This document shows positions 1 through 48,847 of a stretch of 64,000 nucleotides of DNA, one piece after another (the stretch's first letter is position 1; each line of letters begins with the position of its first letter). Both the position numbers and the translations under genes were made by a program. The notes below the pieces were generated by a model. It searched no databases. It had not been told where the DNA came from and saw nothing but the letters and a program-made list of their open reading frames with translations. Source of the DNA: Pavona decussata (taxonomy: Eukaryota); contig CDRNST010000002.1 of NCBI GenBank assembly GCA_977016875.1, forward strand, positions 496,001 through 560,000, in the 5' to 3' direction.

Positions 1-12
1 GACTATACAAAC

Positions 13-1104
13 CTTCAATTCGTCAACATTGACGCGTACAAACAGAGCTTGTCCACTCATTCCATATTTCGCATTCAGTGAATCGTATGAGTCCGATACA
101 GACCTGCATAAATTGCACCTGAAAATAGGTGATATAAATTGTATGTGTTGAGTCATTTTCCAAACGCCTCTGTTAAAGGCTGCGTCTATAGTTATCAGAA
201 TTATCTCGAGAAATACAGCACGAAAACGAGGAATAGGTTTATTTTTTAGTTATTTGACCTCTAAGCCTGATTAAAGAAAACTTTAGACTAAGGTAAATTC
301 CGAGAGCTTGTAAAACTGAATTGAATAGGCCATGTCCGAGTTGCTTTGAACCTCACTATGAAAGCGAGGCCAAGTGCAAAGTTTTATTGTAAATTAGTCT
401 TCATTCACATGTAAACAAAACTTATGTTCGCCCTTAGCCTCGTTTTCGCAATGAGGTTCAAAGCAACTCGGAAATGGCCTGTTCAATTCAGTTTTACAAG
501 CTCGTGAAAGAAAAGAAGTCCGTAGGACATGCAACGAAAATTACAAATGATAACAAGACAAATAAATTCTCACTCACCAAGTAGCGTAAAACTGTACAAC
601 AACAAGTTTGTCTTGTTCACTCAAAACCTCCTCCCACTCATCAATTTTAGTGATGCTCCTCACGTTAATCACTAAAATATAAACCTTTGCTTTATTATCG
701 CCACAATTATGATTGATTATATTAATAAATTAGCACACTGGTGGCAAGATTATGCCAATACTGCAACTACAGTTCTGTTCGAAAAAAAAAGGTAAGCGGT
801 AAGAAATTCCGTGCTTTGCTTTATTGCCTCCCACCAGTTGTTAGTATGTTATGTTCAGTTTGTGCGGCCTTGACCGTCAATGACATGTGCAATATCAATT
901 ATTTCTAACAAAGTAATTTCGCCATTCAGCAAATTACACGGCAGAGAGTACCATAACATTTGTCTGTTGCAACGCGTACTTTAATAGTCGCCTTCTTCTG
1001 TGATTTACTGGTTTCAGTGATGCAAGTCACTGTGAAGGCGATTCTCGCTTAGCTGATATGTCCGTTTTAGACTAAGTTAGACCTTGTCTGGTTCCCAGCC
1101 TTCC

Positions 1105-1135
<31 letters not shown>

Positions 1136-2392
1136 GCGTATTTTCTTAGGTAAACAGTGAGCAGAACTAGGTGTCACTGCAATTTAGAAATGCCAAGGTT
1201 GACTGTCAGAACTACAAACTACATGCAAGTCCTTGCAGATGAATATTAGAATGCCATTAAGAGGTACAGGTTATAAAAGGAGCTCCATCCAATCACTACT
1301 ATTCTAATAAAGCCCTGGCCGTTGCTAGCACAGGAAAAGAAAATGACCTCGGCAGAAATTGAAAACGTACACGGCCTCAGTGGCATTCATAACATATTCT
1401 TATTGCTGCGAATTATTATTATCACTCACGACCTGATCCCATCTAGCCTCGTAGCTTAGTAGATCTTAATTCGGAGGTTGTCGCTTCGATTGTCACCCAA
1501 GGTCTAAACTTTTTTTTTTGCTCGTGTGGCTTCCTATTTCCTTCCTTCACCTCTGCATTTAATATTAGCCGCATAATTAATTCTGTGAATCACCATTGTG
1601 TCATAAATGCTGCGTGGCACAGCATTCATTGTACTCTTCGACTGAAAGATTTCGTATAGCACAGCAGAGTTCGACTCTTGCACTCAAATTTTAACCATCA
1701 AAGAATACGCAAAATTTTAATAAAACAGGGAACAAACTGAGCAAACGCTGTTGCATGTGTAATCACTATAAATGCAGGTCCAATTACAGTTTATTTCTTA
1801 ACTCTATAGGTAGGGTCTATAACTAAAAGACTCATTTAATTGGTTCCCGCTACCACATAAAAAAATATTGCAAAATTGCACACATTTCATTCCGAGTAAA
1901 CTGATAAATGCAGTAACGTCTTTTCCTTTTTTGCTTCTCGTTGGACAAGAAACAAACAAACAAACAAATAAACAAACTTACCTGTCCCCTCTCCGTGGGT
2001 TAGTATTCCTTGCTGATCTGCTCTCTGTACCACAAGCGCTGCACGCGGCGCTAGACCTACACATAATTAATGCAACTCGGCAATAAATGCAAGTGAAGTG
2101 CAATTGGCAATGGATGGCATGAGACAAGGAAGAACAAAACTGTTGTCAGACGGTGGGCCTGGCGTGCTTATCACAAAACATACGCAAACAAACAAACAAA
2201 CAAACAAAAAAACTGTGGATGTTTTTTTTTCTTTTTTTTTTTTTGTTAAATTTATATAATATTTATTGAAATTTATCATTTACAGAGCAGTTACTGTTTC
2301 ATTGACAATATTATATATAGGTTAAAATAATAACAATTGATACATTTTACACAGTTACCCCATTTCTATTTTTAAGCAAATCAAATAATTCA

Positions 2393-2431
<39 letters not shown>

Positions 2432-5400
2432 TCAACTAATTTAACTAAATAAACCAATTAAACCAATTAAACCGAGCAACATCAGATAAAAAAAAAAGAA
2501 TAGTAGATTAGGCGAATCAGCTTTAAAGACTTTTCACGTAGTTATCAATTTCTTCTCATTTGAATATCCATTTCTTTTCATAAAACTTTTTCTTACTTAT
2601 TTTTCTTTCAATATTATATTTGATAGCTATCGTGTTCTGAAAACCTTGTATTTTAGGATGTATTTGTGTTCTTCTACAGTCCCACAAAAACAGTTTTCCA
2701 ATGATAATAAAGTAATTAAGCAGCATATGTGAAGGGCATGGTGTTGAAAGTATTCCGAATAAGACATTTTCCAAAGTCAGGTGAACCACCTGATTTGACA
2801 AGCGGTGCCAATACAATTCAAACTCGTTCCAAAACTGCCTAGCATAAGTGCATTGATAAAGTAGGTGATATAGTGTTTCTCGCTCAGTTTCGCAGAAAGT
2901 GCATAATTCGTCAACTCTAAAACCAATTTTGCATAATTTCGCGTTTGTGTAGAGTATATTATTGAGAATTTTATACTGAAAGGCCTTAACGTACGATTCG
3001 AGTGCAACAGCGTGAGGCAAAATGAAAGATTCTTTCAATAAATCATCTGATATATTAAAATCGCCTTTCCACTTATGAACAATATTAGGAGGCCGTGATT
3101 TCTTCGCAACAAATAACGAATAGTAATCTTTCGATTTCTTCTTTTTCACATCAAAAATGCTGTTATTTATCTGAAGCGAAGAAGGCGTTAGTGGGTGGAT
3201 TTGATCACGCGTATTTTTTAAGAAATCAGGTATTGAGTGTCGAAGGCCCGCCCACTGTAGAATGCTAATTTTTCCAATTTTATTTGAAACGTAACCAAAG
3301 GAATCGTTGATATTCGAATCAAGTCGGAGATCACGTATGTAAATAAATCCGGATTCATAGAAATTTTTGTAAAAAATGGGCTTTTTATCTATTCTTGTTT
3401 CTTTATTATTCCAAATAATATTTGTCCAATTTATGTCAGTAGCGAAACTGTCGCGAAATTGTGACCACCACAGAAGAAGCTCTCGATAAAACTGGGAAGT
3501 GAATGTATAATCCTTAACGTCATAGTTACAATTTAAAAAGAACAGTCCTCCAACTGTTTTCAATTGGTGTTGTAAGTACCGCTTCCATGTCCCATCGTTT
3601 GCGTTGAATATTCGTTTAAGCCATGCCAATCTCAAAGCTTTAACCATGCTTTCTAAATCAATCATTTTTAGTCCACCTTCCCCATAATCATTTATTGTTG
3701 ACACACGCGTTACTTTATCTGTTCCATTCCATAAGAATTTGAATAGCAATTGATTTAATTGTTTCACCAGCTCATTGGGTGTTGGCAGGAGTGAGCATAC
3801 ATAAACAAATTTGGGAATTAGAAAGGATTTTATTATCGTCACTTTACCAAGGATTGAAAGACCTCTGGAAGACCAAATGTTTATCAGTTTTTTAATACTA
3901 TCCAGTCTTTCGATGAAATTCTTTTCTTTGAGCAGTTTTAGGTCATAAGTGAAGTATACTCCGAGAGCTTTTATTGGTTCTATAGGCCATCTAATTCCAA
4001 AAGGTTCTGTTTTATTTTCTTTGGATGCTCCGATCCACATACCCTCGGTTTTTGCGCAATTAATCTTAAGGCCCGAAATGTCCTTGAAAATGTCCAACAA
4101 TTCAAATAAACTTTTGGCCGAGTTCATATCCGAGAGCACTGCAGTAGTGTCATCCGCGTATTGCAATAGCTTTGTTTCCTCATTCTCGATAGAGATTCCT
4201 TTTATCTCCTTATTTTGACGAATGGCAATTGCAAGAGTTTCCACAACTACTATAAAAAGATACAGCGAGAGTGGATCACCTTGCCGGACTCCGCGTTCAA
4301 GCACAAAATAATTTGAAGCAGTTTCATTATTTATAGTACAGCTCTGTATGTTTTTATAAAAAGAGAGAAAGAAAGAAAGTTAGAAAGTTATAAGAAAGTT
4401 AGGTCCGAAATTAAAGGATTCAAGACATTCGAAAAGAAAGTCCCATTCCACGCTATCAAAAGCTTTTTCAAAATCAATAAAAATCATTAGTCCTGGAATA
4501 TTCTCTTCAACAGTATAATCCATTATATCATAGATAGATCGAATTGTTTCGCCTATATAACGATCTTTAACGAATCCTGTTTGATTGTGATGAATAATCT
4601 CTGGTAACACATTTTTAGTTCTCGAAGCGATTACTTTGGACGTTATTTTTGCATCTACGTTGACTAGCGAAATTGGACGCCAGTTTTCAAGGAATGCACG
4701 GTCTTTTCCTTTCTTCTCAATTAGAGTAATAACTGCTTGTTTTTGGGATGAGGACATCTCACCTTTATCAAAGCACTCATTTACACATCTTATAAAACTA
4801 TCACCCATTAGAGGCCAGAACTTTCCATAGAATTCAATAGGGATGCCATCATTCCCTGGTGTTTTGTTGTTGTTAAAAGAATCTAGAAGGCGAAAACATT
4901 CCTCGGATGTAATTTTACCCTCGCATGTGATTTTCTGTTCCTCAGAAAGTTTTGGAATATTTAATTCACTCAAAAAAGCGAGTCTTTTTAACGCAATATT
5001 TGGATCATTGTTACCAGTTTTATACAAATTATGATAGAAACGCTCTTGTTCCTTCAGAATGCTAATTGGATCCGTATTAATAGCACCGTTTATGTAAAGT
5101 TTTCGTATGTGTTTCTTTACGTGATTCCTTTTTTCCAGATTCAAGAAATATTTAGTACTTTTTTCTCCATGTTCATGCCATCGAGCACGTGCACGTATTA
5201 TTATTCCTTCTGTTTTCTCTTCGTAGAGCGCCTCTAATTTTTCTCGTATTGTGTGATAGTGAGTAATGTTAGAATCACTTGTGTTTTTTTCTAATGTTTC
5301 CTTTGCTTTGTTTAGTTCCTTTTGAAGAGTTTTTTCCTCAACATCTCTTTCTTTCGCTTTCTTTTTTGAGTGTGAAATAGCGTGACGTTTAATGTTATAT

Positions 5401-8400
5401 TTAATCCAATCCCAGGTTGAGCGGTCGTCTGACAATTCCTTTTGCCCTTCTGCAGTCCAAATTGGGATCATTTCTGTGACACTCTTTACATACTCTTCAT
5501 CAACTAACAGAGAGCAGTTCATTTTCCAATATCCCGAACCTCTTAGTTCGGTTGCCAATTCTTCTGTATCTAAAGTAATTGCATCGTGATCTGTTCTAAT
5601 TGCGGGAATAATATCAGTTGATTTTACAAGGTCATTTAAATTGTTTGAAATTAACCAATAGTCTAAGCGGCAAAAGATTTTGGGAGATTTTTGGCTCCAC
5701 GTATAACTTCTTGTGTTTGGGTTCTTAATTCTCCATATGTCTACTAAATCAAGCTCGTTTTGTAAACAGTCAATACGTTCCACAACTGATTTTCGTTGAT
5801 TTAGATTTCCTCCTTTTTTATCACAAGCTGGATTGAGGGGGCAGTTAAAATCGCCTCCCATAATTATCTCTTCCTCGGTGTCGAGATTTTCCTTTCTCAA
5901 TATATCATGTAGATTGTTTACGAATTCTATTTGATCTTTGTCTTTGTTTGGAACATAAATATTTATTAAAACATACCTTGAATCTTTTATATCGGCTTTT
6001 AAAATTATATATCGTCCCATGGGGTCCACGATTGTATGCTGTATTTTGCAATCAAAACCGTTTTTTATCAAAATTGCCACTCCACGTGAATTGGAGCTAC
6101 CGTGACAGGCAATAAGCTCTCCGCCCCATTCATTTTTCCATTGAACAATTGTTTCAGCAGTGGAATGAGTTTCTTGTAGAAAGGTTATGTCTGCATTGCG
6201 TAAAGTTGCTTATGCCCTTCACATTAAGCGAAATCAACTTAAAAGACATCGTACTTGCGGAAAGTAACATTGGGACTGCAGAACCATTAATCAACAGAAC
6301 AAAAGATGATAGCAGGCAATATAAATACATGCAAATCACAAATGCAAGAAGTAAGCAATTTAAAAACAAACGATTCGCCGATGTTGCTCGGACTAAATGT
6401 ATGATGCTAGTAAACCTAAAGGGGAAAAAAAGATTATATTCAAAACGGAAAAATAGGAAAACGATATAACAAATGCAAATAATAACTAAAATTACTAAAG
6501 ACCTAATGTGATAGCAAGTAAACAAAAAAGGTTTCACGAGCGATCGAACAAGCATAGTCTAGTAACGGTGTGTTTGCCTCCTGAAAACCGGTCGTGTAAT
6601 TTAATAAAAAAAATTGATGATGATTGAATAATGTAGTATATCTAGGTCTGTTCATTTTTCCTTACACCAACGACTTATGAGGTATTAATTAAAGGATATG
6701 AGGTAAACAGTCTGTGGCGACCGCTTTTCTTTCGAAGAAGGGCGCGCGGAAACGACGATTACAAAGGCCAAAAGTCTAACATAATCCGTATCGGCTCTGT
6801 TTATTTTAAGTCACTAACTGAGATCAGGCGATCACTGAAAGGCAGAAAATCAACAAACATACATACAGCTTGAGGTAGTCCTACTGTTGAACCGCATACA
6901 AGACCGTCAAAGACTGTAAGGCTACTAATCTGCACGGGTTGCGTGAGAAATTACTGTCGCTTCGAGCGAAGCTAAAACCTAGTCAAGACGTTCAGCGACG
7001 TCTCAGCTCCACGTGGAGCTTTAACAGTCCCGTATGAAAAGGCGTCATGACACGTGATGTGTCTCGTTGCGTAACGCAATGCCTAAACGGTTGGGAGGCC
7101 GTTACATGGCTCCCCCAGACATGGTAAAATGTATGAAATTACAGTAAACAAATATGAATAAAACTAAATGTTCTCAGAGTTCACTAAGTAAATGTCTCTC
7201 TTTCTGAGAATTGTTCTGGCTCCCCGACGGGGTCGTACTCTGGTCATTAAGGTCTACTCCAAATCAACCGTTACTTCTATCTTCATCTTGTCGGTAAATC
7301 AGGATCAACTTGTGGATAGGTCTGTCAAATACCTTTCTGGTACCGGATCGAGTAACAAGCAGACGGACTTTACGAACCAGGCCATCATCGCTGGGCAAAA
7401 CTTCGGTAACTTTCGCAAGTGGCCACTGGTTTCTGGGGCATGTTTCGTCACGGATCAGGACGACATCACCAACTTGACTGTTAGGGCTGGTTTCGTTCCA
7501 TTTCTGGCGTTTTTGCTGCAGCATGCAATATTCTCGTTGCCAGCGACCCCAAAACTGTACCGTCAGGTACTGCACTCTGCGCCACCGTTTCTTCGTGTAA
7601 AGATCTGGCCGCGAGAAGTTTCCTGGAGGTGGTAACACCACTTTTGCTTTAAAGGTGAGCAGGTGGTTCGGTGTGATTGGTTCAGGCGCATCTGGATCTG
7701 ACAAATTGTCGATCGTAAGTGGGCGACTATTTACGATGTTTTCTGCTTCTGTGAACAGCGTTCGTAGAGCTTCATCATCTAATTGCTGGGCGTGGTCTTG
7801 CAAAAGGCTTGAGAGAACTGCACGTACGGTGCGAATAAGTCGCTCCCATATGCCGCCCATATGGGATGCAGTTGGCACGTTCATTCTGAACTCGATCAGA
7901 TCGCAATCTTGTGTCAGGAGAAAGTTCTTGATTGCATCAGTATTGACTTCTTTCAAAGCAGCACTGAGCTCGTTTTTGCCTCCCACAAAGTTTGTTCCTC
8001 TGTCGCATCTCAGTTCCCTAACTTTGCCTCTTCGATTGACGAAGCGTCTGAGAGCATTGATAAATGAATCTGTTTCCATTGTGTTTAACGTTTCCAAATG
8101 AATGGCTCGAGATGATAGGCATGTAAAGATTATACCCCAACGCTTTAGTTCTTTTCGACCCTCTTTGATGTACCAAGGGCCGAAAACATCCATGCCTGTA
8201 TACGTGAAAGGCGGGGCAGGAGTAAGCCGTTCTTCAGGAAGGTTAGCCATCTTTTGGACTTGAGCAGATCCGCGTAACTTGCGGCAAGTAACACATCTCT
8301 GAAGCAGATAGGAGATAGAAGACCGACCATTGATTATCCAGTAACCGGCTTGGCGAAGTGCATTGTGGGTCATTCCACGGCCCTGGTGGTGCTGGTCTCT

Positions 8401-11400
8401 GCTGTGGTAGTATCTGATAAGGAGCTCTGTGATATGACTCTTTTTAGGGACGATAATTGGATGTTTCACTTCAAAGGCTAAGGCAGCTTTCTTGAGTCGA
8501 CCCCCCACTCTGGGTAATCCGTTTTGGTCAAGAAAGGGATCCAGCCTGAAAAGTGAGCTTGTCTGTTTCAACTTTTCGTTTCTGACGCGGGCGCTGTTGC
8601 GGTTCTGGAACATGTGGTCACCCTCATTTAGCTTTTGGAGAACCAGGATCTCTTTCTCGAAGTAACGTAACTGCACTGACTTGAGAATAACTTCCTCTGC
8701 TAAGTGCATTTCTTCCACCGTTGGCGGGCCAGCTACTGGTCGTTTATTGTACTGCTTGTTAGGTCGAATCTTTTCAATCATTCTCTGGATAGAGACGATG
8801 CTTCTTTTCAGGCGGTCGAGCGCTGAAGAATGGTTGAAGCGTTCTAGTTCTAGACCTTTGGGGAAGAGTTTCTCTTCTTTCCACTTGGTAACTTCGTGGT
8901 TCGCAATGAGAGCCGTTGCTTTGCATTTCTTTACCTCTGGGTCTTCAGGATTCAAATCAGGAGCAGGGTCATGGTTCACCACCGACACTTGATTCTTCCA
9001 GAGGAAGTCGGGACCTTTGAACCACAGTTCATTTTCCGAGAGTTGTTTGGCAGTTATGCCTCTTGAGGCAATATCAGCAGGGTTGTCAGAGCTGGAGACG
9101 TAAAGCCATTGTGTTGGATCTGAGCTGTCACGGATTTGCTGCACGCGGTTTGAGACATACGTATGGTAGCGTCTTGCTTCGTTGCGTATATAACCCAGAA
9201 CGACGGAGGAGTCAGTATAAAACACCTTCACTAGATCGAAGTAGTTCAAATCTCTGCTAAGCATTGACGCCACATTGACTGAAATCACGGCTGCAGTGAG
9301 TTCACGACGTGGAATTGAAATAGACTTTAGCGGTGCTACTCTCGCTTTACCCATAAGGAGGCTGACATGTACTTGATTCGCATTGTTTACAAGGCGCAAA
9401 TAGGTTACTTGACCCAGGCCTACGTCACTGGCGTCGGAGAAGCTATGCAGTTCTGTGGTGACCGGTTCACCAAAATCGCAGGGTTTGACACATCTTGGGA
9501 TCTTGATATTCTCTAAAAGGGGTAACTCTGATCTCCACTTTTCCCATCGTGAATGAATGTGGTCTGGTACAGGATCATCCCAATCGATGCCGTCACGGCA
9601 CAGTTCCTGGAGTAACTGTTTCCCCACTAAAATCACTGGCGCCACAATGCCTAATGGATCGTATAATGAGCTTACGGATGATAGAATCCCTCGGCGAGTG
9701 AGAGGTTTGTCTTTAAGCTGAATACAGAATCCAATCGTGTCGGACTCTATGCACCAGTAGGTACCCAGTGAGCGTAGGACAGGCAGAATATCATGCCGGA
9801 GATCCAGATCCTTAAGGTCTTTCGAGCGATCTTCAACAGGTAGAGCTTCCAACACTGTCTTACTGTTACTTGCAAACTTGTGTAAGCGCACATTGACGGT
9901 TGCACACATGGCTTGAGTTTTCTTGATAACCTTGATGGCGTTTTCAGGCGTGTCAAAAGACTTTAGTCCATCGTCCACATAGAAATCATCTCGTAGGAAA
10001 TTCGCTGCTTCCGGACCAAACTCTTGTCGCCCAGTTTCAGCTGTCATTCTTAGACCAAAGTTGGCAACGCCCGGGGAAGAGACAGCCCCAAATAGATGGA
10101 CATTCATGCGATACTCAATGATTTGGCCGTCCAGGTTGTTATCCTTGAACCACAGGAATCTCAGGTAGTCTCTGTGTTCAGGGTTTACGTAGAAACTATG
10201 GAACATCTTTTCTATGTCGCATGTCACTGCTACTTCTTCTTTCCGAAATCGTGACAGTACACCAATGAGAGCATTCATCATGTCAGGTCCTTGCGGGAGG
10301 AGTTTATTGAGAGACTGATTGTCGAAGACAGCACTGCAATCGAAGACTATCCGAATCTGGTCAGGTTTCTTCGGATGGTAGATGTCAAAATGCGGAAGAA
10401 ACCAGACTTTGCCTGCTTCGGTCTTAAGTTCCTCTGAAGGGACGGCACTGGCGTGATTTCTGTCGAAGAGGTTTTGCATAAATTCGGTGTAGTGGTTCCA
10501 TAGTTCTCCATTTCTTAGGAACTTTCTCTTGATGCCTAGTAATCTCTTCAAACATTGTTCACGATTATTTGGCAGAGAAACAGTATCTGTTTTAAAAGGC
10601 AACGGCATCTCCCAGTTTCCCAAATCATTTTTGTGTATGCCAGTGGTAAGGATTTCACTGAAGCGCTTGTCTTCTATGCTTTCACCTTTCTCAGTGCCTG
10701 GGATGTTTCGGGCATGGTAGAGTTTACTATAATCCAACTGCATCATCTCTCTTATTTGCTGAGGCGAGGTAACGTCTTTAAGGTGCTGTCTTGTGGCGAA
10801 GGACACTATGGACTCTTCTTTGAAACGGTTGCTTGTTGGCACAGTGAAAACATTCTGAGGGTATTCACTTTGTACTGTGATGCGGTTTACTGAAGCACAG
10901 TTCAATGTTTCTTCTTCTTTGTCGACGCAAACTGGACCAATGATCGTCCAGCCGAACTTGTATTCTTCAGCCCAAGGTTCATTATCGCTGCCATAAATAA
11001 TGCGCAGTGGCTGGAATGCTGAAGGAATGTTACGGCCAATTAATAAGCCTATCTCCACATTGGGACGGTAATGAATGTGACAGGCGATTTCTTCCAAATG
11101 CTTCCAAGATCTGGCTATTTCTGGTGTCGCAATGTCTCTCTGACTAGCTGGAATATTCTCTTGTGAATAAGCAAAAGGAATCTTGATGGCCTTGTGACGA
11201 TTTTCGGTGTCTTGGATTCGTAGACCATTGACTTTCTTGGTGCGGACACTGTTCAAGCCTGTGATCGTATTGATTTCAAGGTTCACTTCTTGGCCTTCGA
11301 CCTTAAGCTTCTCGAGAAGGGGTTCAGTGATAAAGACATCTGTTGACTGATCGTCCAGCACTGCATAGGTGGGTACCTTTGCTGAGGGATTGTCTTGGTG

Positions 11401-20400: not shown

Positions 20401-20612
20401 CTAGGTTCATAAAATGTAGTGTCACAAAAGAGTATTAGTACTAGTATTAAAGGTACTAGCGTCACAAACAGGTATTTACTTAGTTCATCAAGGTATTATT
20501 TAGTGTCACAAAAAAGTACTTACTACTATAATTAAATGAAAGTGAGAAGTGATCATCGCAGTGAATTTTCCAATTTATGCAATTGGAAATTGGAAGCCTG
20601 AAAAAAAATTCA

Positions 20613-20645
<33 letters not shown>

Positions 20646-20862
20646 GTTACCGGTGCGATGCTCTACCAACTGAGCTATGAAGCCACACATTGGGAGCAAG
20701 GTCAATTGTAGGTTCCCATTTTCCCGTGAGAGGAGTGAAACGATGTAAAGTATATGAAATAATTCATATATGAACTGCGGATATAGATGAAAGTGAGAAG
20801 TGATCATCGCAGTGAATTTTCCAATTTATGCAATTGGAAATTGGAAGCCTGAAAAAAATTCA

Positions 20863-20895
<33 letters not shown>

Positions 20896-21342
20896 GTTAC
20901 CGGTGCGATGCTCTACCAACTGAGCTATGAAGCCACACATTGGGAGCAAGGTCAATTGTAGGTTCCCATTTTCCCGTGAGAGGAGTGAAACGATGTAAAG
21001 TATATGAAATAATTCATATATGAAAGATGAAAGTGAGAAGTGATCATCGCAGTGAATTTTCCAATTTATGCAATTGGAAATTGGAAGCCTGAAAAAAATT
21101 CAGGCTTCAACGGGATTCGAACCCGTGAACTCCGCGTTACCGGTGCGATGCTCTACCAACTGAGCTATGAAGCCACACATTGGGAGCAAGGTCAATTGTA
21201 GGTTCCCATTTTCCCGTGAGAGGAGTGAAACGATGTAAAGTATATGAAATAATTCATATATGAAAGATGAAAGTGAGAAGTGATCATCGCAGTGAATTTT
21301 CCAATTTATGCAATTGGAAATTGGAAGCCTGAAAAAAATTCA

Positions 21343-21375
<33 letters not shown>

Positions 21376-21583
21376 GTTACCGGTGCGATGCTCTACCAAC
21401 TGAGCTATGAAGCCACACATTGGGAGCAAGGTCAATTGTAGGTTCCCATTTTCCCGTGAGAGGAGTGAAACGATGTAAAGTATATGAAATAATTCATATA
21501 TGAAAGATGAAAGTGAGAAGTGATCATCGCAGTGAATTTTCCAATTTATGCAATTGGAAATTGGAAGCCTGAAAAAAAATTCA

Positions 21584-21616
<33 letters not shown>

Positions 21617-39600: not shown

Positions 39601-42600
39601 AATGGAATGGAGAGGGAACACTAAATTGATTTGCCTAAATGAAACTCTCGTTAAAGGGTCAAAGGGGATTTCTTGTACAAGATAGTTCAGAATTACCAAA
39701 AGACATTTCTTAATGGAATTTGCGCGCATTATCTGCTTCTTTTTATCCATATGAATGGCCACTTGATCTGTTTCTAGGCTTTCTAGCTGTTTAAGTTACT
39801 TACTGATACAATGCTTCAACTGTTGATTCCCTTGAAAGACTAATGGACAAGACCTGGAAAAAAGACAGTAAGTAGCAGGTAAATGTTCGAAGGTAAAGCA
39901 TGATCATCCTTGTAAGTGTAGTCCTGGGAAGGACTGTTTGAGGTGACAATGACGGATGTTTCGATAACCTGAGCGGAAGTAATCATCAGAGTCAACGTCG
40001 CTCAGCCTGTAGTTTCGTCAGTCGATAGGCACCTTCAGATCTGACTGCGAGTACGACACATCAGTCACATCCCCAGAACTCACTCTCCTTCCCGTTGTTT
40101 ACCAGCAGATAAGGAGACCTTAGAAACAAGATTGGTGCAACAAGCGATTATCTAAACCACGCAAACTAGACTTAAAAGGTGGTACTCGCATTCAATCTCG
40201 TACCCGTAGTCAAATCTGAAGGTCCCTATTGTCAAGTCAAACAGTCCTTTTTTGACTACACTCACCCGGATGATCATAATTTAGCTACTTATGACATGAT
40301 CCCGAATAAGTCAAACCACTTACAGTTTCAGGTAAATATTAGGTTCACATGTGACACGCATCCTACAACCTGATAGCATCAGTAATGTTGAGAGCGTTCA
40401 GAACTCCATTTAGCATGCATTTCCTGTTCTTTGCGAAGCAGCAGTTAGAGGTGAGAAGTTTAACCGTTCGAACTCTTTAACAAGGACTCCCTTGTTTGTA
40501 TTAGTGAGGTGTCTTTAACGTAACCGTCAATTCTTCTTGGACCAGAAGCTTGCCCAAATAGAGAAGTTTCTATGTCACATATGTACACTGTTATGTACCC
40601 ATAAGGAGGCAAAGGTATGACTACATAATTAATGCACATTATCATTGTCAAATAGATGTTGCACGTTTTTACCTGGCCATCTGGCAATCTTATTCTCAAA
40701 TCCACCATTGGTGACTTTCCGACATCACCCTGCTGATCAGCAATGGTTCTGTTTGAAGGCTCAGGTGGCTCCTCTGTAAGTTTTGCTTGTTTTGCCTGGT
40801 AGATCATTACAACAGATATTATTTAAGTCTTTCTCTCAAGTTGCCTTTATCTTCTTTTCGAAAGCGAGGTCTAGTGCAAGGCTGTTAGCATTTAAAACGG
40901 CTTTTCATTCAAGTGCAATTTAAACTGTTTTCACATGTGAAATACTTTGCTCTGGGTCTTGCTTGCAAATAAAAAGGAACAAATGAGATAACAACAACTC
41001 AGAAATAGCCTACTTTTAATGACGTACATATCATACAAGCACTTTAACAGAGCATAAATGTAGTATTGACTTTGACGACTCCTTAATTATAGTGACAACG
41101 GAAACCATCGCAGCCCAAAGATATTGAGTCTTGCACACAGTAAAAACTATGAACATTGACAATATAATCACTTCCGTGACAATAAAGAATTCTTTTAAAC
41201 AAAAACTGACAAACGCTTTTACCAATGTTCCTTTTATTATTCTTTATAGATTTCTTCATATTTTTGAATTTATGTGTAATCACCTTAAAGTAGGTTAAAT
41301 ACTTAAAACCTGAAAAGATTTTCACGTTTCACTTCTTTACAATTACATTTGAAGGGGTGTACGGAATAAGGCCCTAAGGGACTTTTGATGCAAGGACAAA
41401 TTCTCGTTTTGTTTCACAAGTGAATACAAGGCAATTTGGAAGGGGAATCTAGCAATTTATTAGAAGTCACTTGGAGCTTTTTTCCAGGCACCCCTTCATT
41501 TTACCCGTTGAAGACAATAGTCAGGTTCTTGAAAGCTCACAGTTAAAGCGTTTTATTAGTCACAGGCAAGGATAGATGTATTTCCACTGCAGGTCTCTAG
41601 GTCATGTTGTTTGTTTACAATAGACACTGTGAAGGAGTCAGGCACACAAGGAAAGCAACAGATCATGAACGCAATCTCCTGTTGTCTTTAAGATATTTTC
41701 TACATTAAAGGACGGTGCCTACTTTTGTTACTGGACATACGTTTTGCGCATTTCGAGATACTCGGGTTTCCTTTGGGTGGTGCCTACTAATACAGGGATA
41801 TTTTTGCACGGTTTAAACCTATGCGGAGAAAGCAGAACTTAGCAAGTGCTCTTGGCAAAAGAAAATTGGGGGGGGGGGGGGGAGGGGGGGAACCATGCTT
41901 TTTTTCAGAGATACATGTAATAAAGCTACTATTTTGGAAAAAATGCTATACATTGCTTTGTATTTTAGCACTTTTTAGAATTATTGTTTCTCAATCATCT
42001 CTAAGAAATGGTGGTTACCCCCAATTTTCTTTTTGGATTCCAATAGCCCTTGCAAAGATCTGCTTTTTCCGCATAGTAATAAACTGCGCGAAAATACTTC
42101 TGTGTTCAGTTGTAGGCACCGACCTTGAGTACCTGGTTATCTTCACTGCAGTTGTTGGCCATAACACCAAGCTGTTACCTACTAATGACAGCACTGGATA
42201 TATGTTGTATACATAGCTGAATTTATTAAATACAGATGAATGACATTTCAAAGGACTAAATAAAATAATTGTTTGACAAAGTAGGCCAGTACATGTACCT
42301 TTTCCAATTTTTCGTCTTTTTCATCCTTCATATCTTTCAACAAATATTCCTTGTGAAGTTTCTTTCTTTGCTTTTCCAGCCTACATAAAAAAAAAACATG
42401 GTACCATGGTAACTTAACAGAACAAGATGTTTATCCAGCTAGAAACAAGGTGAACCAAATCTAGGACGAGGAGGGAGGGGGGACTACTTGAACCTCCGGC
42501 CCGCTGCCTCCAGTCTGGAAAATACAGTTGGCAATAAAATGCTGTTTGTTCTTTTCCAGTCATCATTCCTCGACCTTTCTCAAGTCATTGCACATTTTGA

Positions 42601-45600
42601 TAACAACACAAACACAAGGCTAGTAGGAATGGTTTTGGTGGCATAACTTGTCAACTATATGATCAAACGATTCCACTACTTATTGGAAGACAAACGAAAA
42701 TCAGTGAAAGGAATAAATTAATCATCTCACTTTGCTTCTTCAATTGCCTCTAGTCTGAGTCGTTCCTGGAACTTGTGCCTCTCGCCAATTGTCTTTTGGT
42801 ATCTAGATACTGGTGCAGGCTGTCACAACAAATAACAATTAGCATGAAGAGTAAATTGTAGTTTTTGCGACAAGCTAGAACGTTCATCATCCTATTTTCT
42901 TTTTTTTCTTAAAGTTCTTTGTCAGTTGACCAAACATGTTCAGTGAAGGAATTAATTATGCAACTGTTCTCTGCTCGTGGCCCTGCTGTACTGGTAATTT
43001 AAGTTAGGCCAGAGCAATCTTAGAGAGTCATACTCGGGACAACAAAGTACGGTAGGGGGACGCTGTGGAGGGTACCAATGTAGAGGGTTAATTTAATCCT
43101 TCCTTCTCTGTTGTCAAAGTGAGCATCTGCGACATCAAAACAGCTCTGATTACTTGGTCTCACTCCCAGGCCTTGTTCGTGGAAGCTTCTCAAGACAGCG
43201 TGGCTAATTGCTGCAAAAATCCGCCTTCTGTCCTCTTCTTTGATTTATCAGATTGCTTTACGAGTCAATTTGTTTAGCTCCAAATCCAATTTTCTTAGAT
43301 TTTTACGCCGACTTTGCCACATCAAACATGTGAACTCTTACTCTACGCATGTATTAGCTTCTTATCGGCAGGATTTTCACAGCTTTCAGACAGGGTTTGC
43401 GGTGGTGGAGTTGAAGCTCAAGCCTTGTGCTGCGATTTGACCGTTTGTTTAATATACTTGTCGTGTAGCTGGCCCACTCCCCTTCGGAAATTAGTAACTT
43501 TGAACTCCCCTCCCCCTCGAAATTTCTGGTGACCCTCCACGTGGCAAAAAAAGATATTATCTGGACCAGTGGAGTAATAATTGTACCAAAAGAAGCGGGG
43601 GTCCTTTGTAAAACAGATATGGAGTTTCTTACAATGGAAATTTCAAAAAGAAACCTACATGTAAGAGATGCCACCTCACAGAAGCAGTTAATTTGATGTT
43701 AAAATTTCATGCACACAAATGCACACAGAAAATCTATTTTAAATTTTAAAATATAAAAATTCTGTATTCAGAGCGCAATTATAACTTAAAAGTGGGATAT
43801 TTCGTTCGGATCCACCTAACTTGAAGTTCAGTGGATTCGAACAAAATATCCCACTTTTAAGTTTTAATTGCGCTCTGAGTACAGAATTTTTATTTTAAAA
43901 TCGTGATTCCAGAGCAGGAAAACAATATTTTTGATTCAATTTTTAAATTGGTTGTCAATTTAGATTTAATACCTTATTACATGTAGAGTGGTACCGAGCT
44001 ATAAATTAACCCCCAAAACTTTGGGACTCCCCTTCATGAGGTTAATTAGCATTATTGCTCATTACTGCTGATATCAACTTACTCCAACAGAAGAGCTGCT
44101 GGCAGCAGAGGACTGAGGGATGCTGTGTGTATCGCTGTGTGGTACATCAGCTGCTGATGCTAATTCTTGTTTCAATTTCACTCTTGCTTCACCAGGATTC
44201 TGGTTTATCCTTGTAGGTTAATACAAAATAAATGAACCCATGAGTAGGCGCTGTTATTGTTCCTTTTCGACCACACCTATTTTCGGGGTGTGTACAGATG
44301 TAGAGAAGGGGGGGGGGGGGGGGCAAAGGAAATAACTTTCCACTTCTCAATGCATACACTTTAACAACAAATTATTGAATCTGAATTTTTAATTTTGTGT
44401 TGTGGACAGTAAAAAAGGTTCACAAGGGTGACAAAAAATGAAGGGAGCAAAACTGCATATATAGACAAAATACAAAAATTTGAACAGCTACATGTAGCAC
44501 TAGCTGTCACACATTTTTAAAAGGTGAAGGTGAAGAGAAGAAAGTAGTCACTAGAGAGAATTTGGTTTTGGTGTTGACATTCTTCTTTAATGAAGAAGAA
44601 TTTTTTTGTACTGCATACAATTTGAAAAATGTGTGAAAAACCTTTGAGATATACAAGTGTAGTATGGTAATAATAATAATGATAACAATATCATTATAGT
44701 AATACTGTAATAGTAATGTATTATAATAACATTGTAATGATAATAGTATTGAATGTTTTTTGTGTAATAAGTAGTGTTGACATTGTTTTGTTTTTCATAA
44801 CTGGTGCATACCCAGGGCTCAAACTCATTACAACGCGAAGAAATCTGGCGATGGTGATGATGATGATCATGAGGATGATGGTACTACATTGTAGAATTAG
44901 CATAATTTAACATGATTATAAAAATATGAAAATAAAAATGAAAAGGAAGTATTACCACTCAATAGCAGGTTGAATCCCTTTGTTCTTTGTTACAATCAGA
45001 GCTTTTTCTGCAACAGCAACATCATAACCTAAATGCAACATAATATTGGTGAGGTGATACTAAAACACAAGGCACACTGAAAGGGATATTAAGTGAATCA
45101 CAATTGTCACTACACTGCATAACTACTGCAATTAAGGACAGCACCCACTAAAAAAGAAGTATTTTTTGTGTGGTTTATGACTATGCAGGGAAAGCAGATC
45201 ATAGCAAGGGCTTTTGAAATTCATAAAGAAAATTGGGGGTAACCACACATTTTTCAGAGATAATTAAGCAACAATAAATTATTCTGAAAAACAGTAATTA
45301 TAAAATACAAAGCAACGTATGGCATTTTTTTTCCAAATTGAAGCTTTTTTTCCTCTGAAAAATGCATAGTTTCCCCAATGTTCTTTTTAGATACAGAGAG
45401 CATGTTGTTGCTAAGTTCTGGTTTCTCCACATAGTTTTAACCCACACAAAGATATATCCCTGTATTAGTAGGCACCACCCATAGGAAACCCGAGTATCTC
45501 AAGATGCATGGAATGTATGCACAGTAACAAAAGTAGGCACCGTCCTTAAAGAAATGCATGTATGCATTTGACACCATTTAAGTGTTTGATCACTTTTCAG

Positions 45601-47943
45601 GAACTTTACTGAGTGAAAGAAATGGGATGTTACATTGTACATTTTAAGCTTGATGATCATCTTACTACACTAGTTCAGATGTTCTACCACTGGGCTACAG
45701 GAGACTCATGGGAACTAGGCATTAAAGAACATAAAAAAACAAGGAGAAAAACAGAGGAAAGACAAACACAACTAAGCATTTTGTCATTACCCATTATATA
45801 CATCTATGATGTTCTCAGTCTTTCAATTACATGTAATAATAAAATTGTTCTAATGTTTACAATTATTATTACCCATTTCCTTCATGTAGGAAAGCAAAGT
45901 AAGGTCTGCTTTTACATCTTGATCAAACAAGCTCTCCCCTGAAATAAAAATGAATGATCATAGCAAGTTTGAACAGAGACACTATCAAATGATGGTGGAC
46001 GCTCTCTCCTCGAAGCAACCAATGGGTAGATTGACAAGCAGTCTATTTACTGAGATGAGTTTTCATGTGTGAATGATGACCTATATTGTATGTGAGAGGG
46101 GAAGGTATGTCCACAGAAACTGCAGGGAATTTAGGAGGTGATCTAGGCTGGTCACTGCTTTCTTCTCTCCTTCTTTTCCTGTGCTGCAGCCATTCTCTCA
46201 CTGTCTCACCCGAATAAGGGGACATCAAAGAACAAACTTGACATTAAAAGTGCTAGTATCAGCTAGGGTATAGGATCTCTAAAGAGGAAGAATAGGAGGC
46301 ACTCAATGATGTTTTAGTGGAAAGCGCAAATTCAGGCAGTCAGCCGTATCAATGAACACATGTTTGTCTGACTGGCTAAAATAGAACTTGCCGATACATA
46401 TTTTAAGTACCATGAACCAATGCAACCAGAGGCTACTGACAGAACAGGAATTAAGCACGGTGTGATTAGAAGCACAATACATGTATGTATAGCACAACAT
46501 AAACAAAGTTAATACTTGCCTTTTTGTGAGTTTAGTTTGAGGACATTGCTAGTTTGACTTGAATCTGAAGGGCCATTGCCAACATGGCTTTCCTTATCTG
46601 AGGGTGGAATCCCAAGCACTTCATCAATCAAGAGTTTGGTTCCATCTAGTTTTACTGAAGAAGGAAGAACGAGAAAGTCCCCTTCCTGTAATGATGACAA
46701 ACAAAATAGAACATTAGATGTCAATAGCATGTGTACTGTACATATTGAAATTCACCATTTTGACACAAGTTTACAGAGGTAGAAGACTGTAATGAAGGTT
46801 CCTCAGTTAAGACAAAATAACGACAATTTTAAATAACCATGGTAATCATTAAAAATAATATTAAGAGAATTTAGCATTTGTCTGTATCATACCATAAATG
46901 GGAATGACTTCAGGTCATGCTTATGCCCATGGGGGGTACTCCCTTATATGGGCTATATAGGTATGTGCGGCGCCAGAGGGTATGGTTTTTCAGCCGCTTT
47001 GGTCATAAATAGGGTATCAATTTTAGCCATTTTGCCACCATTTTGGTAATAAATAGGGTATCGATTTTTGCACTCTAGTCTTGAATTTGTCTTTTTTTTT
47101 TTTAGAAGAAACTACTGTTTACGGCAACTGTGTACATGCCGCAACGGCTTGTCACGCGCTCCGGTCACGCGCTGGGCTCCAGGGGAGTTTTGAACTGAAG
47201 TTAAAAACCAGACACTATAAGGTCATAAATAGGGTATCAAATTTTTGGTCAGGTCATAAATAGGGTAGGGAAAATCGCAGATTTTGGTCATAAATAGGGT
47301 AAGGGTTTTGGGAAGCGGGCCGCACACCCCTACCCAATTTTTTTGGGAGTACCCCCCCCCCCCCCCCGGGTGCTTATGGTCCCTAAATAGCTTAGGGAAA
47401 ACATTTATGGACATATGATTCACACTCTGACAATAAACTAAATTACTGAACTCTTCAGTAGTGCATTTTTCATCACAAATGTTCAATATTTTGCTGTCAT
47501 GTATATATTTAAAAGTTAATGGAGTGTCTAATCTGTACCTGTTCAAATCCTGAAAGCAACAGAAATGTCCGTGCCGGCTCCAGTTGCCATATGACTGCAT
47601 TGAACTTTGGATTACCTGCAATTTCCAAATTAACATACATCAAGATTATTCTCAGTTTTCGACAACATAAAAGATTCCTTATGGAACTGCAGTTTTCTCC
47701 AAAGCTTAATGACAGCCCTAAACATGCCATGTCCTTGATTCAAACTGGTAGACATGTTAGACTCAGTCATGCAAAAATATGAACTATTTACACATGACAG
47801 ATATTTGCCAGTGTATATGCATCAGACCTCAGCAGACCAGGAGTCATAAAGACATTTCGACACCCAATTTACAACCAATATGAAAGTGGGTCTGATGCAG
47901 GAAATCTGCAACACATCAGTTTGACCCAATTCAAATAAATAAG

Positions 47944-47978
<35 letters not shown>

Positions 47979-48847
47979 AATAAATAAACTCAGAGCCATG
48001 CCCAGGGTGGGGCGGGGGACTCTCATATGAAAGGGGCAGGGATGCTTGTCGTCTTGCTTAGGGGTGTAAATTTCGGATTTTGGTCTCACTTAGGGTGTTC
48101 TGGGCAAAACGCCATTATATTTGGCCGTGAAGGTCTCGTTTACGGTTGCACGCGAAAAGTTACGGCATTTTTTATTTGTCTGTGTGTTAAAATGGTCTCT
48201 TTGAGGGGGTCAAAAAAGTGTGGGCCATGCCCAGATTGGTCTCCTTTAGGGGTTTAATTGAAAATTTCCGATGAACAAACCCACCCCTTTCATATGAGAG
48301 TCCCCCGAGGTGCCATGTCCATCAAAAGCAGGGGTAAAAGTGTATGATTGTCCCTCAGACACCGCCAGGCCAAGAAATTAAAATAGAAATTAACAGTGTT
48401 GGCAAATAGTGGTATGCAAATCAGCCTTTTTCTAGTCCCCAGCTTCTTTGATCTGCAAATAGTGTTAACATTAAATAGCACCCACTTGTTGATTGAAGAA
48501 GATTGAAAAAATAAAGCAAGGCAACATTATATGTAGATATTTTTGCTGCTTCCACATTTTCTCTAACAAGTGCTTTTTCTAGCAATTTTTTAACAAAAGC
48601 CATTGCAGAATATGAATCTTTCACTTACTTATTCTAATTTTTCTGTATTTTGGATTCTCAGGGTTTGTCACGATGTTGTTGACATAGACTTGCATCAAAG
48701 AGAGCGCATTTTTGGCCTGATCTGTGTCGGAGACTGATCTTAAAGCCTCCTATAACATTAAAAGAAACAATTGGAATAACCATTGTATAACTGAGATCTA
48801 TAAAAACAACAGGAAGCAAAATGATACATTACCAAAGCAAACTCCAT
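13..48847 (-). CDS. Multi-exon gene for a PUB-UBA-UBX-thioredoxin domain protein (putative p97/VCP cofactor); 3' end lies outside the window
   Basis: 15 phase-consistent coding exons totalling 1380 nt (460 aa, no stops): 48833-48847, 48629-48749, 47539-47615, 46520-46685 (GC donor), 45873-45938, 44956-45028, 44083-44209, 42731-42819, 42299-42380, 40673-40795, 39804-39853, 16191-16306, 1982-2056, 578-671, 13-118. Motifs: PUB ([24 protein letters not shown]...[17 protein letters not shown]), UBA ([30 protein letters not shown]), charged coiled coil, UBX (LRIRLPDGQ...TVEALYQEV...[32 protein letters not shown]), thioredoxin ([16 protein letters not shown]...FVRVNVDE). Confidence 0.9.
304..503. 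mobile_element. MITE-like element with long terminal inverted repeats
   Basis: gagcttgtaaaactgaattgaataggcc...ggcctgttcaattcagttttacaagctc; about 65 bp imperfect inverted repeats and no coding capacity. Confidence 0.6.
2556..6249 (-). pseudogene. LINE ORF2 (APE endonuclease + reverse transcriptase + C-terminal Cys/His region), disrupted
   Basis: [13 protein letters not shown] start at 6249; FLQETHS, GGDFN, RLDYWL, TDHDAI endonuclease motifs; [31 protein letters not shown] motifs. Frame breaks near 6200 and at 4355-4395. Confidence 0.9.
6713..7106 (-). repeat. 3' LTR of BEL element 1
   Basis: Near-identical to 13860-14253; ends tgt...aca. Confidence 0.95.
7264..13824 (-). CDS. BEL/Pao gag-pol polyprotein with one in-frame TGA (12625-12627)
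   Basis: ORFs 12625-13824 and 7264-12534 share one frame. Gag CCHC knuckles, protease (LDDQST), RT (YVDD), RNase H ([14 protein letters not shown]), integrase ([22 protein letters not shown]). Confidence 0.88.
13860..14253 (-). repeat. 5' LTR of BEL element 1
   Basis: Near-identical to 6713-7106; contains AATAAA on the element strand at ~13947-13952. Confidence 0.95.
14268..15164 (-). pseudogene. LINE ORF1 (coiled coil + L1-type RRM/CTD) with a premature TAA
   Basis: [32 protein letters not shown] and [10 protein letters not shown] are L1/Tx1 ORF1 motifs. In-frame ATG at 15164 is followed by a TAA at 15120-15122. Confidence 0.85.
16373..16640. repeat. Short interspersed non-coding repeat (MITE-like)
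   Basis: Internal imperfect inverted segments (aaacactcgtcacagtgtttcatcac / gtgatgaaacactgtg). Family not identifiable without a library. Confidence 0.4.
17280..17462. mobile_element. MITE
   Basis: Terminal inverted repeats tagacctttttcataa...ttatgaaaaaggtcta. Confidence 0.65.
17771..19100. repeat. 665-bp direct tandem duplication
   Basis: 17771-18435 is repeated essentially identically at 18436-19100, with 'ac' microhomology at the junction. Confidence 0.9.
20537..21743 (-). mobile_element. Five tandem ~240-bp tRNA-related units flanked by a 12-bp TSD
   Basis: Units start at 20536, 20787, 21027, 21267 and 21507. tRNA-like cores at 20613-20684, 20863-20934, 21103-21174, 21343-21414 and 21584-21655 (GGCTTCA/TGAAGCC acceptor stem, A and B boxes, GGT loop). 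actataattaaa at 20525-20536 and 21744-21755. Confidence 0.85.
24608..25322 (-). mobile_element. 5'-truncated CR1/L2-type LINE 3' fragment, copy 1
   Basis: Degenerate RT C-terminal coding (HSYNT...RTNYGKHTF...W) with an (ATTGA)-like tail; paralogous to 37026-37763. Confidence 0.7.
27372..27742 (+). repeat. 5' LTR of BEL element 2
   Basis: Matches 34604-34974. TATA-like tatataa at ~27502, GT-AG intron candidate at 27559-27661, AATAAA at 27691-27696. Confidence 0.95.
27766..34463 (+). pseudogene. BEL/Pao gag-pol with a premature TAA (27880-27882) and a frameshift near 30349
   Basis: Gag ([12 protein letters not shown]; CPLC, CFNC and [15 protein letters not shown] knuckles split across frames), protease LIDSGSD, RT YVDD, RNase [10 protein letters not shown], integrase GVDFFGP/SDNGTNF. 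Confidence 0.9.
28833..29235 (+). repeat. 102-bp (34-aa) coding tandem repeat in gag, about 4 copies
   Basis: [34 protein letters not shown]-like units starting at ~28841, 28943, 29045 and 29147. Confidence 0.9.
34604..34974 (+). repeat. 3' LTR of BEL element 2
   Basis: Matches 27372-27742. Confidence 0.95.
37026..37763 (-). mobile_element. 5'-truncated CR1/L2-type LINE 3' fragment, copy 2
   Basis: ORF 37329-37694 (...[37 protein letters not shown]). Same ends and same left satellite junction (gtactagagtcacaa) as copy 1. Confidence 0.75.
41705..42127. mobile_element. MITE (same family as 45132-45549)
   Basis: TIRs aaggacggtgcctac...gtaggcaccgacctt. Confidence 0.65.
43744..43900. repeat. 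Near-perfect ~155-bp palindrome (foldback/MITE remnant)
   Basis: aaaattctgtattcagagcgcaatt...gatccac / gtggattc...aattgcgctctgagtacagaatttt. Confidence 0.8.
45132..45549. mobile_element. MITE, inverted relative to 41705-42127
   Basis: ttaaggacagcaccc...gtaggcaccgtccttaa; the internal sequence is the reverse complement of the 41.7-kb copy. Confidence 0.65.
46931..47367. mobile_element. MITE with G/C-rich TIRs
   Basis: ggggggtactccc...gggagtacccccc, with internal ggtcataaatagggta repeats. Confidence 0.65.
48014..48306. mobile_element. MITE
   Basis: gggggactctcatatgaaa...tttcatatgagagtccccc TIRs. Confidence 0.65.

Follow-up and report, generated by a model that had tools for sequence, protein, structure and literature searches.

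Can a single animal protein hold the AAA+ unfolding machine p97 (VCP, Cdc48) at both of its ends, take up ubiquitin chains and carry a thioredoxin domain of its own? The question is raised by a gene in a 64,000-nucleotide (nt) stretch of the genome of the stony coral Pavona decussata (assembly GCA_977016875.1, contig CDRNST010000002.1, positions 496,001 to 560,000 of the forward strand), which we refer to as the window. An earlier note on this DNA had described 15 phase-consistent exons with 460 codons that join PUB, UBA, UBX and thioredoxin domains, and had proposed a p97 adaptor that reduces the disulfides of its clients. UBX domains bind the N domain of p97, PUB domains bind its C-terminal tail, and UBA domains bind ubiquitin. 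We rebuilt the gene from stop-free stretches and splice sites in the window DNA, which is AT-rich, animal-type and gap-free. The gene lies on the minus strand, and its 15 exons in the window run from 48847 down to 13, comprising 1380 nt or 460 codons. Acceptors are AG throughout the 15-exon model, donors are GT in 14 cases and GC in one, the split codons are all sense and there are no internal stops. With splice sites and phases checked, all of the exons described earlier were present, and the junctions 39804>16306, 16191>2056 and 1982>671 were recovered as the same joints. A word search with the stop-free stretch around exon E15 brought up the same open reading frame (ORF) in a sister assembly (L005, in which position 10156 corresponds to window position 1) and in two related corals (loci L006 and L007). 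The full gene has 17 exons (E1 to E17) encoding 523 amino acids (aa), the last two exons being located just beyond the left edge of the window.

Concerning whether the UBX and thioredoxin exons belong to one gene or two, sequencing runs were examined against window positions 1-2300. X18 and X19 are two runs of one study under the same species label, counted here as one; that they are RNA is only a guess. Each contained one minus-strand contig of 1043 nt covering E13, E14 and E15 contiguously. Window segments 1985-2058, 575-673 and 9-115 were found at positions 569-642, 644-742 and 743-849 of this record, respectively, with introns of 1310 and 459 nt removed and GT..AG ends at the joint 115>575. 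The contig extends a further 568 nt upstream and 194 nt downstream of the E13-E15 block, and its downstream letters match E16 save for two differences. In the genomic sequence, the UBX domain is not closed by a stop codon in E13, which ends in phase 1 with a GTAAGT donor. Runs X1-X4 matched only the repeat at 323-512 and not the exons of the gene. In other corals, contig L008 is intron-less with an ORF of 501 aa that extends over the whole protein, PUB and thioredoxin tail included. Logan contigs of 2.0-2.7 kb, also intron-less, encode versions of 499-537 aa. The spliced contig, the intron-less contigs with the whole ORF and the RefSeq models of other corals agree in that the UBX and thioredoxin exons are one gene and one spliced message. 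The earlier note had left room for transcripts that would place the thioredoxin exons in a separate gene; the contig spliced as E13>E14>E15 contradicts this.

The domains were identified exon by exon in the window, and whole-protein domain scores were taken on database orthologues (Pfam cut-offs: 34.3 bits for PUB, PF09409, and 21 bits for UBX, PF00789). E2 alone exceeded the PUB gathering score (36.0 vs 34.3 bits), and E3 continued the profile. The order of the Pfam matches along the exons was collinear with the profiles (PUB 2-32 and 34-58, UBA_7, UBX 41-70, thioredoxin 5-28 and 30-61), and matches of adjacent exons to adjacent profile positions are not expected by chance. In the orthologues, the scores were all well above the Pfam thresholds, with 62-69 bits for PUB, 33-40 for UBA_7, 40-55 for UBX and 64-71 for thioredoxin. 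The protein thus read consists of PUB, UBA, a charged helix of ~60 residues, UBX, a short Gly-rich linker, a thioredoxin with a CxxC motif that starts ~15 residues after UBX, and a tail of ~25 acidic residues ending in D-P-R. Among structures in the PDB, E14 matched the cytosolic-type LAFCA/LECA thioredoxins (E = 1.4e-4), and the coral thioredoxin matched classical cytosolic thioredoxins with E = 2e-16. In the AlphaFold2 (AF2) model of P0020, the closest full-length orthologue, the thioredoxin displayed the expected alternation of strands and helices with a predicted local distance difference test score (pLDDT) of 76-91, the charged region was modelled as a single helix (219-277), and the UBA had three helices.

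We then read residue conservation from an alignment of 13 orthologous proteins, ten of which bear the thioredoxin. The most conserved stretch in this alignment was the charged helix. The PUB motif N..K-Y/F-R-x-I-R is kept in all 13 proteins, with Tyr replaced by Phe in Acropora. The stretch N-N-I-V..P-K-Y-R-K-I-R of the coral PUB aligns column by column with D-N-I-L..E-K-Y-R-S-I-R of PNGase, and the positions of N41, K50, Y51 and R55, the residues of the PNGase PUB that bind the p97 tail (PMC8181520), are retained. The UBA is located N-terminal to UBX, and its M-G-Y loop aligns to that of the UBXN1 UBA. In the UBX domain, the strand-1 Arg is kept within R-I-R-L-P-D-G (general form R-x-R-L-P-D-G). 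The F-P loop between strands 3 and 4 of UBX domains is the element that inserts into the p97 N domain; the coral loop T-S-F-P-Q is invariant in the 13 orthologues and aligns to F-P-R-R of UBXN7, the third loop residue being Gln, not Arg. As for the thioredoxin, the active site W-C-N-L-C is split across E14 and E15 and the cis-Pro lies in E16; none of the ten orthologues with this domain deviates at the Trp, at either Cys or at the cis-Pro. The ratio of the proportions of nonsynonymous and synonymous differences (pN/pS), summed exon by exon, was 0.19 against L006 and 0.17 against L007, and the CxxC motif was unchanged in all three loci. The gene is conserved under purifying selection. The acidic tail ends in an invariant D-P-R, preceded in most species by E-M-Y-F or D-T-Y-V and in Pocillopora by L-N-H instead. 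E-M-Y-F and D-T-Y-V are reminiscent of the PUB-interacting motifs D-L-Y-G of p97 and D-M-Y-R of OTULIN, and the tail might, as an internal ligand, bind the PUB of its own protein.

A profile combining a single protist PUB protein with the coral PUB exons led to full-length models. Models with all four domains were found in at least nine species of stony corals: Montipora foliosa (XP_068694359.1), Montipora capricornis (XP_068741522/3), Oculina patagonica (XP_078373827.1), Porites lutea (XP_073242302.1), Porites evermanni (CAH3030856.1), Porites lobata (CAH3165283.1), Pocillopora verrucosa (XP_058945046), Pocillopora damicornis (XP_027040207.1) and Pocillopora meandrina (CAH3033611.1). Their database names are 'uncharacterized protein' or 'UBX domain-containing protein'. 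The 17 exons of P. decussata all align in order to seven full-length orthologues with 65-77% identity. Immediately after PUB exon E3, isoform X1 of Montipora capricornis (P0064) has 17 inserted residues, possibly from an alternative exon or a retained intron. Our literature searches brought up no study of this architecture or its accessions and no characterised protein with this combination of domains, in agreement with what the earlier note had said of its novelty; on the other hand, the architecture already stands in databases for these coral species. As RefSeq already contains the models, the gene itself is no discovery; what is new here is that its architecture has been recognised.

The models of three Acropora species (P0013, P0022 and P0086-P0088) differ. 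Those of Acropora millepora, A. muricata and A. palmata are 380-406 aa long, are named 'UBX domain-containing protein 1-like' in RefSeq, and share the sequence up to the end of E13, after which a nine-residue tail (..E-S-D-S-N-N-G) follows without a thioredoxin. Montipora, which belongs to the same family as Acropora, keeps the thioredoxin. Judging from these protein models, the thioredoxin exons behave as a block that is gained or lost where E13 meets E14, and the absence of the thioredoxin in Acropora looks like a lineage-specific loss or an alternative last exon. In terms of taxonomic reach, no member was found outside Scleractinia in searches that were word-limited and too weak to show absence. 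A phmmer search with the PUB exon against 1.84 billion representatives returned only exon-sized ORF fragments and one protist protein, on contigs of 0.7-4.4 kb that were uninformative about the architecture, a metagenome scan with a stretch of E14 gave no matches, and a word search with the PUB region of the protist protein P0008 found only P0008 itself. A distant PUB match, L015, was set aside as an unrelated protist protein.

Taking into account the domain families and the retained residues, we consider it fairly probable that the coral protein is a UBXN1/SAKS1-like adaptor of p97 with a working redox module. The earlier proposal is supported in part. Each domain keeps the residues that its textbook role requires; the thioredoxin is non-canonical (CNLC/CSLC vs CGPC, with Gln at the position of the buried Asp). 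As the domain families suggest, UBX would dock on the N domain of p97 and PUB on its C-terminal tail, with UBA taking the ubiquitin chains of clients. Because the thioredoxin follows UBX so closely, its place would be at the substrate entry, on the N-domain/D1 side of the ring. In this position, it may reduce disulfides that would impede the threading of retrotranslocated or oxidatively cross-linked clients. Reduction of client disulfides coupled to unfolding is, tentatively and by analogy with known systems, the most likely role for the thioredoxin. Taken to its full extent, the proposal would be a stony-coral UBX adaptor with a built-in disulfide reductase, which holds both ends of p97 along with ubiquitin chains, positions its CxxC at substrate entry and couples unfolding to reduction. 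Such a protein would be the p97 counterpart of the proteasomal thioredoxin TXNL1, possibly tuned to the oxidative load of photosymbiosis and with a tail that possibly serves as ligand for its own PUB; with all of these parts together, we regard the proposal as possible and doubtful.

Several observations weigh against such an adaptor-reductase. Evidence from RNA in P. decussata is limited to a single study, in which the RNA nature of the runs is a guess, and reaches no further than the 3' half. The whole-chain AF2 model of P0020 is poor, with a mean pLDDT of 54.8 and a shallow alignment, and can be used for the thioredoxin domain and the long helix only. The dipeptide within CxxC varies, with S-L in most orthologues, A-L and S-S in others and N-L in P. 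decussata. In addition, Gln replaces the buried Asp (Asp26 in the E. coli protein, V-V-V-D-F in LAFCA/LECA) in every member with a thioredoxin. In classical thioredoxins, the buried Asp activates the resolving Cys. The domain has the thioredoxin fold and a CxxC, and lacks the C-G-P-C and buried Asp of a canonical Trx1. With a variable dipeptide and Gln in place of Asp, its reductase activity may be weak; in view of its Gln and of a dipeptide other than G-P, it would probably work more slowly than cytosolic Trx1 as an oxidoreductase, or be more specialised. Finally, the Acropora models stop before the thioredoxin, so at least one lineage would be able to do without the module.

The altered active site and the loss in Acropora keep two other roles of the domain alive. 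In the first, the gene and its docking on p97 are the same, and the thioredoxin acts as a redox sensor, the oxidation of whose CxxC would switch the behaviour of the adaptor under oxidative stress, or as a maintenance module, which would keep redox-sensitive cysteines of p97 itself reduced. p97 is inactivated oxidatively via a Walker A cysteine in D2. The non-canonical dipeptide and the Gln are common to all thioredoxin-bearing orthologues and suggest an altered reactivity, and a module missing from the Acropora models would be accessory. Nevertheless, a thioredoxin placed behind UBX, which docks on the side of the N domain, would lie a long way from the D2 ring, and the strict conservation of both Cys and of the cis-Pro resembles that in working oxidoreductases; we take a sensor or maintenance module to be rather unlikely. 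It is improbable that the domain is a non-redox holdase or a binding surface for unfolded clients. A study on TXNL1 reports a chaperone function independent of ATP and redox state (PMC10570131), and the variable CxxC dipeptide would fit, but the invariance of the Cys pair, the Trp and the cis-Pro in the ten orthologues and in the three coral loci would be unexpected were catalysis irrelevant. That the fusion is a modelling artefact, joining a UBXN1-like gene to a separate downstream thioredoxin gene, is barely credible, for although the Acropora models finish after UBX and the thioredoxin scores of the window exons individually remain under the Pfam threshold, the spliced contig crosses E13>E14>E15 with canonical GT..AG ends, E13 runs into its donor without a stop after UBX, and intron-less contigs from other corals hold all four domains in one ORF.

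The exons and the two enlarged introns are listed in Table 1.

Table 1. Exons of the P. decussata gene and its two enlarged introns. Positions are those of the window unless preceded by L005 (sister assembly).
Feature	Position	Strand or place	Length	Content and evidence
E1	48833..48847	-		Start codon and first 5 codons, M-E-F-A-L; donor GTAATG; orthologue models start M-E-x-A-L
E2	48629..48749	-		First half of PUB with N..P-K-Y-R-K-I-R motif; Pfam PUB 36.0 bits, profile 2-32; PDB matches to PNGase and UBXN6 PUB
E3	47539..47615	-		Second part of PUB; continues the E2 match on the Pfam PUB profile (34-58); 20-22 of 25 residues shared with orthologues
E4	46520..46685	-		End of PUB and Ser-rich linker; GC donor, phase 1; junction Q-K-G-E-S as in orthologues
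E5	45873..45938	-	66 nt	UBA helix 1; 19-20 of 21 residues identical in all orthologues; aligns to UBXN1 UBA 1whc via orthologue P0020
E6	44956..45028	-		UBA helices 2-3; Pfam UBA_7 17.2 bits, profile 15-35
E7	44083..44209	-		End of UBA and variable Ser/Ala-rich linker; phase fits; low conservation; pLDDT <50 in P0020 model
E8	42731..42819	-		Start of long charged helix; 24-28 of 29 residues identical in orthologues
E9	42299..42380	-		Charged Lys/Glu-rich helix; best-conserved stretch of the protein
E10	40673..40795	-		Linker and UBX strand 1, ..R-I-R-L-P-D-G-Q; aligns to UBXN7 UBX
E11	39804..39853	-		UBX strand 2 and start of helix; orthologue alignment and splice phases
E12	16191..16306	-		UBX core with S3/S4 loop T-S-F-P-Q-R-R; Pfam UBX 16.8 bits, profile 41-70; matches to p47 and UBXN7 UBX
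E13	1982..2056	-		Last UBX strand and Gly-rich linker; ends in phase 1, donor GTAAGT; in spliced contig
E14	578..671	-		Thioredoxin beta1-alpha1-beta2 to the Trp before CxxC; Gln at buried-Asp position; Pfam thioredoxin profile 5-28
E15	13..118	-		Thioredoxin active site C-N-L-C, helix 2, strand 3; Pfam thioredoxin profile 30-61; coding sequence continues past window edge
E16	L005:11010-11072	left of window		cis-Pro motif L-P-T-F
E17	L005:12216-12344	left of window		Last thioredoxin helix, acidic tail ..E-M-Y-F-D-P-R, stop codon
Intron 11	16307..39803		23.5 kb	BEL/Pao long terminal repeat (LTR) retrotransposon (ORFs 27901-34463, + strand) within ~9 kb of 41-bp satellite
Intron 12	2057..16190		14.1 kb	BEL/Pao element (ORFs 7264-13824, - strand) and element with endonuclease and reverse transcriptase (RT) of long interspersed nuclear element (LINE) type (2556-6080, - strand)

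The intron after E4 is of the GC-AG type; its donor (46518-46519) stands in a strong consensus, AAG|GCAAGT, and the resulting Q-K-G-E-S junction is confirmed by the orthologous proteins. A model of 14 exons and 438 codons without E5 was also considered. Since the length of this exon keeps the frame, its omission leaves no trace in the frame; the model was ruled out by the presence of the UBA helix-1 exon in the orthologous proteins.

Introns 11 and 12 are enlarged by these retroelements and the satellite. The equivalents of intron 11 and intron 12 are ~2.3 kb and ~1.5 kb, respectively, in L007, where E8-E17 are packed within 12.3 kb, and that of intron 12 is ~1.1 kb in L006. The retroelement insertions in both introns are not present in L007. 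Both BEL/Pao elements have long open pol ORFs (Peptidase_A17, RT, integrase, DUF5641), and the LINE-type element contains an endonuclease, an RT and a zf-RVT domain with one frame break. The 41-bp satellite, with higher-order periods of 82 and 123, occupies 19805-20495, 21750-27371, 34974-37025 and 37770-38764; it lies to either side of the BEL/Pao element in intron 11, which suggests that this retrotransposon inserted into the satellite. At 20536-21742, we found five copies, 98% identical, of a 240-bp unit whose consensus includes a tRNA-like T-arm/acceptor stretch (..GGGATTCGAACCC..), and the array may be a tandemly amplified tRNA-derived short interspersed nuclear element (SINE). The repeat at 323-512 in intron 14 is short and occurs in hundreds of contigs of every RNA run examined, with a summed word depth of up to ~56,000. 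It is probably an element resembling a SINE or a miniature inverted-repeat transposable element (MITE) embedded in many transcripts.

How disulfide-bonded or oxidatively cross-linked proteins are prepared in the cytosol for threading through p97 is poorly understood. To our knowledge, the reductases of the pathway act in the lumen of the endoplasmic reticulum (ERdj5, PDI) or on the proteasome (TXNL1). A protein in which a thioredoxin is naturally fused to a full set of p97- and ubiquitin-binding domains would provide a ready-made, testable case of reduction coupled to unfolding, and the Acropora models without the thioredoxin and those of the related Montipora with it offer a natural comparison. 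In coral biology, the protein is a candidate for connecting protein quality control with oxidative stress.

Among known systems, UBXN1/SAKS1 shares with the coral protein the layout of UBA, charged helix and UBX, and its UBA (1whc) is the best PDB match of the coral UBA (E = 5e-5). The coral protein differs in its additional N-terminal PUB and C-terminal thioredoxin. Moreover, the coral UBX is nearest to that of UBXN7 in the PDB. UBXN6/UBXD1, which consists of VIM, PUB and UBX, resembles the coral protein in combining PUB and UBX in one adaptor that in principle touches both faces of p97. On the other hand, the coral protein has a UBA and a thioredoxin and carries its PUB at the extreme N terminus, this PUB matches that of PNGase (E = 1.5e-5) better than that of UBXN6 (E = 2e-3), and its UBX keeps the F-P loop, which we also count as a difference. 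A VIM motif (R-x5-A-A-x2-R) was not seen in the coral charged helix when inspected by eye, without a formal test.

Thioredoxin-like folds occur elsewhere in this pathway. The UAS domain of FAF1, UBXD7 and UBXD8 has such a fold within UBA-UBX adaptors (PMC8181520), but it precedes UBX and has no CxxC, whereas the coral domain follows UBX, matches PF00085 and keeps the CxxC. In C. elegans PNG-1, a thioredoxin domain takes the place of the PUB of PNGase, and disulfide reductase activity is reported in PMC6429583, which cites Kato 2007. PNG-1 is likewise a cytosolic protein with a thioredoxin, linked to endoplasmic-reticulum-associated degradation; unlike the coral protein, it has a CGPC motif, is without PUB, UBA and UBX, and is a glycanase, not an adaptor. 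TXNL1/TRP32 is a redox-active thioredoxin on the degrading proteasome, as described in three studies (PMC12700817, PMC12700798, PMC10570131). The likeness here is a thioredoxin parked on an AAA+ unfolding machine during substrate processing. In contrast, TXNL1 docks through its PITH domain on Rpn11/Rpn2/Rpn10 of a different machine, the 26S proteasome, and Pfam gave no match to PITH (DUF1000) in any of the coral orthologues.

A parallel, a thioredoxin tethered to Cdc48/p97 via PUB, comes from protists. The diatom sPUB joins a PUB to a thioredoxin, and redox regulation of Cdc48 has been proposed for it (PMC3101018, PMC4108028); the tethering of a thioredoxin to p97 via PUB has thus already been described in diatoms (PMC3101018). 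We also observed a separate, apparently protist family (P0028, P0029 and P0034, along with Ectocarpus Esi0071_0018 of the same type) in which P0028, P0029 and P0034 consist of thioredoxin, UBA, an OTU1-type zinc finger, a coiled coil and PUB, with no UBX. In P0028, the thioredoxin spans 16-104, UBA_7 158-201, the zinc finger 228-256 and PUB 446-505. The tether via PUB is common to this type, sPUB and the coral protein, and the P0028 type has a UBA as well. In the protist type, however, the thioredoxin comes first and the PUB last, while the coral protein has the reverse order and a UBX in addition. With its different order, and with a zinc finger and no UBX on the protist side, the coral arrangement looks like a separate assembly of similar modules.

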